A stretch of 63,588 nt of DNA, the filler included, from Octopus bimaculoides (lineage: Eukaryota), in assembly GCF_001194135.2 (NCBI RefSeq). It is 8 parts of 7 records of this genome, joined end to end, with 100 filler letters (N's around TTAATTAATTAA, not from the genome) between each part and the next. Parts side by side here need not be neighbours in the genome. Positions count along the whole stretch, not along the records: positions 1 to 16,360 come from NC_068991.1; 7 more parts are not named here. One strand, given 5' to 3'. Each line of letters starts with the position of its first letter. Within the stretch, counting starts at the first letter, position 1. The notes under the pieces were generated by a model, which saw nothing but the letters and a program-made list of their open reading frames with translations, made no database searches and was not told the origin of the DNA. The translations under genes and the position numbers were made by a program. Below are positions 10,253-13,720 of the stretch, piece after piece.

Positions 10253-10363
10253 TTACTTAATTTCGAGGGACATGATCTCAATATTTCCTAGAATCTTCAG
10301 TTGTCCCCCTTGGACATAACGTCGATTTGTGAAGGTTTTCTTAATCTGCCCGTTAACAGAAAC
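10253..10363 (-). CDS. galectin-fold protein, terminal coding exon
   Basis: Acceptor ttttcttgtacaatttag|GTT, phase 0; VSVNGQIKKTFTNRRYVQGGQLKILGNIEIMSLEIK* is colinear with the galectin C-terminus (V.VNG.....F..R......L.I.GDV.L.SV). Confidence 0.8.
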   Translation of the reverse strand, partial: VSVNGQIKKTFTNRRYVQGGQLKILGNIEIMSLEIK

Positions 10364-11995
10364 CTAAATTGTACAAGAAAATTTCAATTAATGCTCTGAA
10401 AATCACAAATTTAATCAATAGAATAAAACCAGAATAAAAACTTTGAAACATATTGCTTTTCAGTTGATATCTAAATCCATAGCAGACGAGACCTGTTATA
10501 CTGGTAAGGTTGAGCAAAACTATGAAGAAGAAGCTGACAAATAAATTCCAGTCAGATGTGATGTTGGACATGTCTGATACCATTCCTCAACAATTCTTTT
10601 AAAAGAAAATATTCTAAATACTTTGTAATTGCTTACATTTCTATTATTCTATAGATTTAGGCAACGCTGAGCGTAAAGTGGAATTAATCATTAAAAATTA
10701 TAACCAAGTCGCTGCATTAGATCTTGTCACTCATAGAATTACAATTCTTTATATGTCACTGAAGTATCACTGAAGAGGGCACAGATGTATGATTTCCAAA
10801 CAATGGACATGAACAGTAATAAACGAGTGAAGAATGAATATATAGTGCATGTGTTTATTTGGCAACAAAAAATAATGACTATCCCGAAATACAACAATAT
10901 ATACACAAGAAGAGATATATAGACAGACAGACAGACAGACAGACAGACAGACAGATAGATAGATAGATAGATAAATAGATAGATAGATAGATAGATAGAT
11001 AAATAGATAAATAGATGTAGATATGAATATATATATATATATATATATATATACATANNNNNNNNNNNNNNNNNNNNNNNNNNNNNNNNNNNNNNNNNNN
11101 NNNNNNNNNNNNNNNNNNNNNNNNNNNNNNNNNNNNNNNNNNNNNNNNNNNNNNNNNNNNNNNNNNNNNNNNNNNNNNNNNNNNNNNNNNNNNNNNNNNN
11201 NNNNNNNNNNNNNNNNNNNNNNNNNNNNNNNNNNNNNNNNNNNNNNNNNNNNNNNNNNNNNNNNNNNNNNNNNNNNNNNNNNNNNNNNNNNNNNNNNNNN
11301 NNNNNNNNNNNNNNNNNNNNNNNNNNNNNNNNNNNNNNNNNNNNNNNNNNNNNNNNNNNNNNNNNNNNNNNNNNNNNNNNNNNNNNNNNNNNNNNNNNNN
11401 NNNNNNNNNNNNNNNNNNNNNNNNNNNNNNNNNNNNNNNNNNNNNNNNNNNNNNNNNNNNNNNNNNNNNNNNNNNNNNNNNNNNNNNNNNNNNNNNNNNN
11501 NNNNNNNNNNNNNNNNNNNNNNNNNNNNNNNNNNNNNNNNNNNNNNNNNNNNNNNNNNNNNNNNNNNNNNNNNNNNNNNNNNNNNNNNNNNNNNNNNNNN
11601 NNNNNNNNNNNNNNNNNNNNNNNNTATATATATATATATATATAATTTACCTTTTGAGATGATGACAAGTCATGATGCTGAAATTATCTAAACATATTAG
11701 ATTTTTACATCATCAATTGAATTTCTTTATTGATCATAGCATTTTTATTCCCACACTATGTAAAACAATGTTAAATACATATAACTAATTACATCCAGGT
11801 CTTATCTACTTTAATCTTATCATTAGTACCAACAACTCATGTGAAAAATTGTAACCTTTTATATTACGTTATTTCAACAAATTAAGTACATTTAATGAAA
11901 TCTGCTAAAAACATCACGATTAACAAAATATCGGTATCCAACAGCGTTACTTCATCCTTATTCACTGTAATCAATAAGAAACTAATTTGGCATAC

Positions 11996-12152
11996 CTTGT
12001 TGTAATATGGACTTGTACTCATCAGAATCTGGAATGTGTCACCACAATGAAATAATTTATTGGATCCTTTTTTAAACCGTGGAATTTTATGTTTCCAGCG
12101 GAAGTCATAATTTAGAGGTGTTACTTTAGGTTGCTCAATAGTGACTTTAAAT
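11996..12152 (-). CDS. galectin-fold protein, middle exon
   Basis: Acceptor ttttcatatatttacag, donor AAG|GTATGC, phase 2 to 0; (R)FKVTIEQPKVTPLNYDFRWKHKIPRFKKGSNKLFHCGDTFQILMSTSPYYNK. Confidence 0.8.
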
Positions 12153-12887
12153 CTGTAAATATATGAAAATACAACTTCATTATGTACACACACGCGCGCA
12201 CACACACACACATACACACATTTATGCATACACACACACACACACACACACACACACACACACACACACACACACACACACACACACATATATATATATA
12301 TATATATATATATATATATATATATGTGTGTGTGTGTGTGTGTGTGTGTGTGTGTGTGTGTGTGTGTGTATATATTTATACATAAACAGATACACATATT
12401 TCCAACTGCTTCACATAGCTGCCTGAATTGTGCCTAAGATGCTGTACAAAGATATTTTCTCACTCTCACTGGAGACACACCCAAGGACTATCACAGTTTT
12501 GGGGGGAAATTGGTTTTCATAATGTCCGTGTCACGTCTTACAGCCTTTGCAGAATATACAGAGCATTGAGTATCAATCATCATGTCGGCATTTTGATAGT
12601 GTACAATAAACATACTAATAAGGATGAGGGGGGGAGGAGGAGAGGAAGAGGAGGAATGTCACTAGATGATATCTTTGGATCGCTGAGAAAAATACATGGT
12701 GTGCTGTAAGACGATAGGTTGATGGTGGAAGTGAGATAGAAAATGTCCAGAATAGAGGAGAGAAATTAGGATGGTGCTCGGAACAAAATGCAGAAGAGGG
12801 AACTTTACCAATGCAATAAATCCGCGAGACATGCTCATAAGATCCTCTGCTCTTTTATTGTGATGGATTAAGACTAAACTATAGAAC

Positions 12888-13080
12888 TTATTATTATTAT
12901 TATTATTATTATTATTATTATTATTATTATTATTATTATTATTATTAACATTATTGTTATTATTTTGTGAGAGAGCAGTACGTGCCATCAAAGTGACACT
13001 AGGGTTAAATATACGAAGCCCATTATACCCATCGTGACTACCCGTCTGATAAGGGTACACCAGGAACATGCATCATAACC
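12888..13080 (-). mobile_element. 5'-truncated LINE 3' end with long (TAA)n tail (probably R4/Dong-like)
   Basis: Non-repetitive ~120 bp segment followed on the minus strand by (TAA)n; class inferred from the tail only. Confidence 0.45.
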
Positions 13081-13426
13081 AAGAATCAACTGAAAAAAGG
13101 AATCTGAATATAACCTTGTTAATTATTCTGTATATAAAATTGGAAAGGATACAATTGTACGTCATCAAATATAGATCATGAACTCTTCTAATGTCAATAT
13201 ATAGTTAGTAGTACTGGAGATCACAGTAGTGAAATCATAAGAGAATGATTAACGATGTTCAGGTAAACATCCTCTGATGATGATAATAGAGAATGTTTCC
13301 TTTCATATAAAGTGTTAGCTTATGAAGTATTTTTAAAATGTAGTCGTAAAAACAACTAAAATATACAGGAATGTATATTATTATACCATCATTTAATACG
13401 AGAAAAATGTAAAGTTGAAATTTTAC

Positions 13427-13509
13427 CTCTGACATGGTGATATTGCAATGGCCGTAAGTATGATAACCATACGTCTGCATAGTGGTAACTTCATAGTTAA
13501 TTTAAATAA
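13427..13509 (-). CDS. galectin-fold protein, first domain exon
   Basis: Acceptor tcttttctgttatttgcag, donor GAG|GTAAAA, phase 0 to 2; LFKLTMKLPLCRRMVIILTAIAISPCQ(R), colinear with the galectin N-terminal strands ending in QRF. Confidence 0.75.
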
Positions 13510-13696
13510 CTGCAAATAACAGAAAAGACGTATGATATGTAAGCTATGATGTGTGTCTTAGTTTTACACAAGATTTTCTTATATTTAATATTACGAGAGT
13601 GTTGTAAATATATAATGTGCGAAAAAAACTGTACCATGTAGCAAACTGAAAAAAAAAACACATGCATATATTCTTCTATGCTTCTACAATACGTAC

Positions 13697-13720
13697 ATTG
13701 ACTGTATCATGTTGTTTCAT
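13697..13720 (-). CDS. putative initiator mini-exon of the galectin-like gene (MKQHDTVN)
   Basis: ATG preceded by an in-frame TAG; donor AAT|GTACGT in phase 0 matches the next acceptor; alternative start is the ATG inside the 13427-13509 exon. Confidence 0.35.

Follow-up and report, generated by a model that had tools for sequence, protein, structure and literature searches.

Galectins fold as a beta-sandwich of 11 strands (S1-S6 and F1-F5). Carbohydrate-recognition domains (CRDs) of the F4 type include those of vertebrate galectin-7 and galectin-10 and the N-terminal domains of tandem-repeat galectins. GRIFIN, LGALSL/GRP and galectin-10 have the galectin fold with degraded sugar residues and are presumed to act via protein contacts, and they keep a full, conserved domain of 130 residues. 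Three exons encode a galectin domain, and the middle one, termed the W exon, has its end in either the F4 or the F3 strand (PMC5751359). Here we describe the 3' end of an Octopus bimaculoides gene, LOC128249093, which lies on the minus strand of a 63,588-nucleotide stretch of DNA from this species (hereafter, the window). We estimate at about two in three the probability that this is a real Octopus gene with a degenerate F4-type galectin cassette at its 3' end, probably non-lectin and fast-evolving.

The F4-type CRDs that were compared directly with the octopus cassette are those of an eel protein, XP_035239585.1. The two have in common the three-exon cassette, the intron positions and phases, a homologous C-terminus and the Trp of the middle exon. 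In contrast, the octopus W exon is shorter, no more than two of seven sugar contacts can be aligned, Pfam scores are below threshold, the stretch before the 'RF' motif is uniformly hydrophobic, and the ratio of non-synonymous to synonymous distance (omega) is about 2. Degraded sugar residues are also common to the octopus gene and to GRIFIN, LGALSL/GRP and galectin-10. Unlike the domains of these proteins, however, the octopus module is shortened, fused to repeats and fast-evolving.

The predicted arrangement of the octopus protein resembles that of chimera-type galectin-3, in which N-terminal non-lectin tandem repeats are followed by a single C-terminal galectin-type domain. The repeats of galectin-3 are Pro/Gly/Tyr-rich 9-mers, whereas those of the octopus gene are Lys/Glu-rich 21-22-mers with one exon each, and the galectin-3 domain is of the F3 type with an intact binding site (PMC5751359). 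Nothing indicates a common origin for the N-terminal parts of galectin-3 and of the octopus gene.

Gene structure and galectin ancestry

Strand reading and translation of the three minus-strand exons, which we call C, D and E (Table 1), reproduce exactly the peptide that had been proposed from the DNA alone (the sequence-only reading). With 100% identity, this peptide matches the last 116 residues of XP_052827821.1 (131 amino acids), which is named "uncharacterized protein LOC128249093 [Octopus bimaculoides]" and is placed on chromosome record CM046611.1 of assembly GCA_001194135.2. A pyrimidine-rich tract and AG precede each exon (ttatttgcag at exon C), the donors are GTAAAA after exon C and GTATGC after exon D, and the phases are 0/2/0, so the splice structure originally proposed is reproduced. 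The corresponding exons of O. sinensis (83, 160 and 111 nucleotides) have the same structure, and the 12-nucleotide flanks of every splice junction are identical in the two species. Exons C-E belong to a real gene, whose 3' end they form as the last three coding exons of the NCBI model, and they are used in three annotated proteins, one per species. The other two are XP_036362891.1 of O. sinensis (421 amino acids) and CAI9729904.1 of O. vulgaris (233 amino acids), both 64% identical to the O. bimaculoides protein.

Several other statements of the sequence-only reading have to be revised. The gene was thought to be hidden from automated annotation, but it is XP_052827821.1, and its orthologues are annotated in both other species. 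Nor is it entirely missed among the listed open reading frames (ORFs), because exon D sits inside one of 171 amino acids (11882..12397). Exon C was taken to be the first exon. It is internal, with an acceptor as well as a donor site, and the model has two more small 5' coding exons, encoding MSIASD (exon A) and AHVKFLKDP (exon B). Exons A and B lie beyond the edge of this piece of the window, which itself stops at an assembly gap.

Gene structure provides evidence of ancestry that is independent of sequence similarity scores. When the eel protein was mapped onto its own gene, its domain units were found to start in phase 0 and to carry two introns, one of phase 2 within the Arg codon of the 'RF' motif (ID/RFSIDL, where the slash marks the intron) and one of phase 0 before the F4 strand (EGYQ/VNVNGQ). 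The octopus introns (PCQ/RFKVTI, phase 2, and YYNK/VSVNGQ, phase 0) agree with these in position and phase. The octopus gene thus has the three-exon organization of a galectin domain, and its exon D, which ends right before VSVNGQ, is of the F4-CRD type. MAFFT, which is blind to introns, places the octopus 'RF' on the eel 'RF' and aligns exon C with eel GMSVYFKGRVLPNNNR. Therefore, the 'QRF' landmark noticed earlier by eye does coincide with the galectin 'RF' motif, the site of the phase-2 intron in a true galectin gene. Exon sizes estimated from residue counts of the matches are ~89, 205 and 114 nucleotides in eel, compared with 83, 157 and 108 coding nucleotides in octopus. The W exon is therefore ~16 codons shorter than that of eel (157 versus ~205 nucleotides).

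Sequence comparisons identify the same family. Pfam Gal-bind_lectin (PF00337) is the sole family that matches this part of the protein, and every one of the three orthologues matches it on its own (E 0.002, 0.017 and 0.0027; 18.1, 15.0 and 17.6 bits, where the gathering score is 22.1). In all three, the match is confined to profile positions 73-132. An exhaustive phmmer search of 1.84 billion representatives matches the 3214-residue eel protein, which has 20 galectin domains, with an E of 4.7e-8 and eight matched stretches. When a profile of two octopus sequences was compared by hhalign with a profile of 18 eel domains, residues 75-131 aligned with eel columns 82-139, the last 58 columns of the domain (probability 89.5%, E 2e-6). 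The C-terminal 57 residues are 33% identical to the eel consensus, and sequence searches of the PDB return weak galectin matches (E 0.2-0.5).

The canonical galectin site has seven sugar-contact residues: His, Asn and Arg of strand S4, Asn of S5, and Trp, Glu and Arg of S6. In the MAFFT alignment, the S4 Arg is kept in both species and the S5 Asn in O. sinensis alone, and the Trp-Glu-Arg group falls inside the deletion. In the alternative phmmer alignment, the Trp alone is kept, and the missing piece is the S4 region with His-Asn-Arg. Which piece of the W exon is missing, that of S6 or that of S4, is thus dependent on the alignment, and at most two of the seven contacts survive either way.

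We conclude that the cassette descends from a galectin domain but fails the tests of a canonical galectin. The earlier proposal of a galectin-fold protein accordingly stands for the C-terminal part, which is homologous to a galectin CRD. It does not extend to a canonical galectin, given the Pfam scores, the shortened W exon and the largely absent sugar signature. The Pfam comparison suggested with that proposal has the same mixed outcome, with the family matched in all three orthologues but below the gathering score and over part of the profile.

An internal duplication, for which the best local match of the N-terminal half was the C-terminal half of the galectin profile, was dropped as unsupported.

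Table 1. Positions in the window of features at the 3' end of LOC128249093.
Feature	Position	Strand	Remarks
Exon C (exon 1 of the sequence-only reading)	13427..13509	-	83 nucleotides; counterpart of the first exon of the galectin cassette; residues 16-43 of XP_052827821.1; encodes LFKLTMKLPLCRRMVIILTAIAISPCQ plus 2 nucleotides of an Arg codon
In-frame internal ATG	13492..13494	-	Met21 of XP_052827821.1; start codon of the sequence-only reading
Hydrophobic stretch MVIILTAIAISPC	13432..13470	-	RR and QR on either side; internal in the annotated proteins
Intron C-D	12153..13426	-	Phase 2
Exon D	11996..12152	-	157 nucleotides; counterpart of the galectin W exon; encodes (R)FKVTIEQPKVTPLNYDFRWKHKIPRFKKGSNKLFHCGDTFQILMSTSPYYNK
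Supported galectin-homology segment	11996..12058 (exon D), on through 10363..10256 (exon E)	-	Residues 75-131 of XP_052827821.1
Intron D-E	10364..11995	-	Phase 0; holds assembly gap 11058-11624
Exon E, coding part	10253..10363	-	108 nucleotides plus TAA (111 in all); encodes VSVNGQIKKTFTNRRYVQGGQLKILGNIEIMSLEIK; galectin strands F4-F5-S2-F1
Possible polyadenylation signal AATAAA	10118..10123	-	First downstream of the stop codon, at 129 nucleotides; weak evidence in AT-rich DNA

Divergence and distribution in Octopus

Rates were compared between O. bimaculoides and O. sinensis, with exons C-E set against colinear orthologous non-coding blocks. Exons C, D and E are 83%, 83% and 88% identical, respectively, compared with 88-98% for the 100 nucleotides on each side of the exons. 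In total, 54 of 351 exon nucleotides differ (15.4%), as against 345 of 4328 aligned non-coding columns (8.0%; p 1e-5), a set that may slightly underestimate the neutral rate because it consists of DNA that BLAST can align. The Nei-Gojobori method gives a non-synonymous distance (dN) of 0.20, a synonymous distance (dS) of 0.10 and an omega of 2.0, which effectively comes from one species pair because the O. sinensis and O. vulgaris sequences are identical in the exon region. Codon bootstrapping yields 95% intervals for omega of 0.98-5.8 for exons C-E and 1.09-5.0 for exons A-E.

The same bootstrap places dN at 0.14-0.27, compared with a non-coding distance of 0.084. Thus, amino-acid changes in the coding exons accrue ~2.4 times faster than substitutions in intron and intergenic DNA, and the contrast between non-synonymous sites and non-coding DNA is strong (Fisher p 9e-7). 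With just 7 synonymous differences, the comparison of non-synonymous with synonymous sites alone does not reach significance (p 0.11). The differences are distributed 25/20/10 over the three codon positions. Exon changes are rich in transversions, with a transition:transversion count of 21:34, compared with 212:133 in non-coding DNA (p 0.002). The exons carry a single indel, an in-frame codon, although the non-coding rate predicts ~3.5 such events. In 14-17% of simulations the frame stayed open after 55 random substitutions, so that an intact frame is by itself weak evidence. However, because neutral decay predicts equal rates in exons and introns, the excess of exon changes, with the frame and splice sites kept, points to positive selection.

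Exons that diverge faster than introns are known from venom toxin genes (PMC6062510, PMC2474615). The snake venom genes for phospholipase A2 and three-finger toxins likewise have more divergence in exons than in introns, and a dN that exceeds dS (PMC6062510, PMC2474615). The octopus gene differs from them in fold and organism, no multigene family was detected, and there is no evidence that its product is a venom component.

The phmmer search described above returned the O. sinensis and O. vulgaris orthologues as close relatives. The only other matches with E < 0.001 are the eel galectin and a repetitive protein, the latter aligned elsewhere on the query (residues 32-61), and no close relatives outside Octopus were found among the 1.84 billion representatives. 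The gene has so far been seen only in Octopus. Word-index searches for homologues, run once with the protein and once with the alignment of the two species, returned the query's own record alone. These searches missed known orthologues that are present in the searched collection and have several exact 5-residue words in common with the query, so their negative results are weak for this gene family.

The O. vulgaris locus was used through pattern search and alignment, and its model CAI9729904.1 skips exons A and B. In this locus, exon D and its flanks are present twice (58900-59300 and 74171-74571), ~15 kb apart and 100% identical over 401 nucleotides. The second copy is downstream of the gene's end, and exons C and E were found once each. 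Either a segmental duplication took place very recently or the doubling is an artefact of the assembly.

Extent of the protein and surrounding DNA

A product of 116-124 amino acids with an N-terminal signal peptide, as proposed by the sequence-only reading, does not agree with the extended gene structure. The reading frame is open upstream of the Met21 ATG to the exon C acceptor, and in the O. sinensis protein ~290 residues precede the shared part. Most of these residues form Lys/Glu-rich repeats of 21-22 residues, each encoded by its own 66-nucleotide exon. The O. sinensis repeats (residues 100-231) have a far sub-threshold Pfam match to LED_rpt (PF20854; 21 bits, with a cut-off of 59).

Upstream of the O. 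bimaculoides gene, the DNA aligns colinearly with the O. sinensis repeat region and has the same kind of repeat exons, which fall within a neighbouring gene model of 131 amino acids. In coordinates of the O. bimaculoides locus, the DNA of this neighbouring model is at 1-3617 and the exon A region at 9947-10018, both of them outside the window and upstream of the gene. Exon A of O. bimaculoides has kept its acceptor, and 54 nucleotides of open frame lie upstream of the annotated ATG, the first 42 of which are identical to O. sinensis coding sequence. Moreover, the annotated Met of O. bimaculoides is a Leu codon in O. sinensis, and the annotated start codon seems to be misplaced. Because the repeat exons are syntenic upstream and the exon A frame is conserved before the annotated ATG, it is most likely that the O. 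bimaculoides model lacks the true 5' end and that a single gene has been divided between two models. The repeats and one C-terminal galectin-derived domain occur in one polypeptide in the O. sinensis model, although such models are predictions and the O. bimaculoides sequence is annotated as two genes.

The hydrophobic stretch MVIILTAIAISPC begins at residue 29 of the 131-amino-acid model and at about residue 318 of the 421-amino-acid orthologue. Its maximum Kyte-Doolittle mean over 19 residues is 1.6, which is borderline for a membrane helix. The O. sinensis counterpart is LIIILTGIAVLPC, and the changes are conservative. With these positions it is not a cleavable N-terminal signal peptide of either protein, and it is modelled as beta strands in the galectin-seeded structure prediction described below. 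It may form two paired buried strands, anchor the protein in a membrane or, in a short isoform beginning at Met21, serve as a signal peptide.

The run of N's at 11058-11624 is wholly inside intron D-E, and no reading frame crosses it. Both flanks of this gap are colinear with the gap-free O. sinensis intron, in the same order and orientation (in locus coordinates, O. bimaculoides 17590-18211 with O. sinensis 59881-60479, and 18779-19929 with 66037-67163). At the position of the gap, O. sinensis carries ~5.5 kb. When the loci of O. bimaculoides and O. sinensis, with this 5.5 kb, were translated in all six frames, they contained no missing exon with H-NPR or W-E-R motifs and no additional galectin-like reading frame, and the Pfam and hhalign alignments cross the D/E junction without a gap.

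Microsatellites are a usual cause of assembly breaks, and this gap is bordered by (AT)n and (AGAT)n repeats, with 10913-11057 at the gap edge. Intron C-D has a (TTA)n repeat at 12888-12964 and a (TG/AC/AT)n repeat at 12186-12369, the latter within ~35 nucleotides upstream of the exon D acceptor. This dinucleotide run holds the exon D frame open upstream and accounts for the 'CVCVCV' part of the 171-amino-acid ORF. Many microsatellites are also present across the rest of the window, where no Rfam or tRNA matches were found and where other long ORFs have no Pfam match. In the ~10 kb downstream of the gene (window positions 1-10252), there is neither a called gene nor any match to Pfam, Rfam or tRNA models, and the sequence has microsatellites and short assembly gaps (7500-7752, 8174-8183 and 8891-8900).

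Competing explanations and biological meaning

In the explanation that we favor, the last three exons of the gene are a degenerate copy of the three-exon F4-type galectin CRD cassette. The C-terminal strands F3-F4-F5-S2-F1 are still recognizably galectin, and the W exon has lost ~16 codons. This module is predicted to sit at the C-terminus of a longer protein with charged N-terminal repeats, in a chimera layout analogous to that of galectin-3. It could act as a surface for the recognition of proteins or non-canonical ligands under diversifying selection, and, by analogy, its setting might be that of reproductive, immune or secretory proteins in an arms race. From the rate of change, we infer a role in a co-evolving recognition process. 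A fuller scenario is that a galectin cassette was remodelled in the Octopus lineage, whereby it lost the sugar core, gained a leader-like strand of hydrophobic residues and became joined to charged repeats, and that it is now part of a rapidly co-evolving recognition protein (for example, of gametes, immunity or secretion) in which selection makes exons diverge about twice as much as introns. This scenario is tentative, and we give it slightly less than even odds.

Several observations weigh against the interpretation of the gene as a degenerate, fast-evolving galectin cassette. The Pfam scores of 15-18 bits are below the gathering score, and the match does not cover the whole domain of ~130 residues. 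The N-terminal half alone has no significant hhalign match to the galectin profile (E 0.16). A single-sequence AlphaFold prediction of the 131-amino-acid model is unusable, with a predicted local distance difference test score (pLDDT) of 34. When AlphaFold2 was instead supplied with an alignment seeded with eel galectin domains, it produced ten strands (pLDDT 81.9; predicted template-modelling score 0.75) with low confidence at the deletion site alone, and this model matches galectin structures with template-modelling scores of 0.68-0.79, chicken GRIFIN (5nlh) among them. However, because the alignment was seeded with eel galectins, all that the model shows is compatibility of the sequence with the fold, and it is not independent proof. 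Canonical beta-galactoside binding would have been lost judging from the missing residues, and the kind of selective pressure is likewise inferred. To these points are added the limits on the rate estimate that were given above, namely the non-significant test within the exons, the reliance on one species pair and the possible underestimate of the neutral rate.

Three other explanations deserve consideration. The similarity to galectins might be fortuitous and the protein an unrelated orphan, as could be argued from the fact that no match reaches a curated threshold and that the PDB searches give an E of 0.2-0.5. Yet Pfam with three orthologues, the phmmer match to eel, hhalign and the PDB search agree on the same C-terminal part and the same family, and two introns coincide in position and phase with those of a true galectin domain. 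We therefore regard chance as very improbable. A decaying relic is easier to envision. In this case, a galectin pseudogene would be drifting neutrally, and the gene models would be over-predictions of annotation pipelines. Such a relic would explain the sub-threshold Pfam scores and the shortened W exon, an amino-acid identity of just 64-66% between congeners and the lack of a homologue outside Octopus in the phmmer search, and a frame can remain intact by chance at the frequency seen in the simulations. However, drift predicts equal divergence where exons and non-coding DNA in fact differ (15.4% versus 8.0%), and dN is well above the non-coding distance. In addition, changes cluster at codon positions 1 and 2, their spectrum is unlike that of non-coding DNA, O. 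bimaculoides and O. sinensis are identical at all six splice sites and in the sequence flanking them, and no frameshift has occurred despite the indel events expected. These facts make a relic unlikely.

Equally doubtful is the possibility that a short transcript or an alternative promoter yields a small secreted protein of ~111 amino acids, which would start at the internal Met (MKLPLCRR...) and carry a signal peptide followed by a functional divergent galectin. The sequence MKLPLCRR-MVIILTAIAI-SPC is indeed arranged like a signal peptide, with charged, hydrophobic and small-residue parts, O. sinensis also has Met21, secreted proteins typically evolve fast, and the O. vulgaris model, by skipping exons A and B, implies that transcript structures vary. 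Conversely, the exon C acceptor is conserved, all three annotations join exon C to coding exons farther upstream, and the frame is open upstream of Met21. If exon C were not part of the fold, the ~88 residues left would not suffice for a complete galectin sandwich, and the sugar-binding signature is absent. Furthermore, the hydrophobic stretch aligns with galectin strands ahead of the 'RF' motif and the shared phase-2 intron.

Databases label this gene and its orthologues merely "uncharacterized" or "hypothetical" and assign no domain, and a literature search for four identifiers, those of the genes and proteins modelled in O. bimaculoides and O. sinensis, found no mention of them in the papers covered. 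The present analysis exposes a 5'-truncated and probably split O. bimaculoides model. The link to galectins gives the gene an evolutionary origin that rests on intron positions common to octopus and fish, and the gene may be an example of a lectin fold that has lost its sugar site and been reused. Because its amino-acid change is above the local neutral rate, the gene is a candidate for adaptive evolution in cephalopods, for which few such genes have been described.

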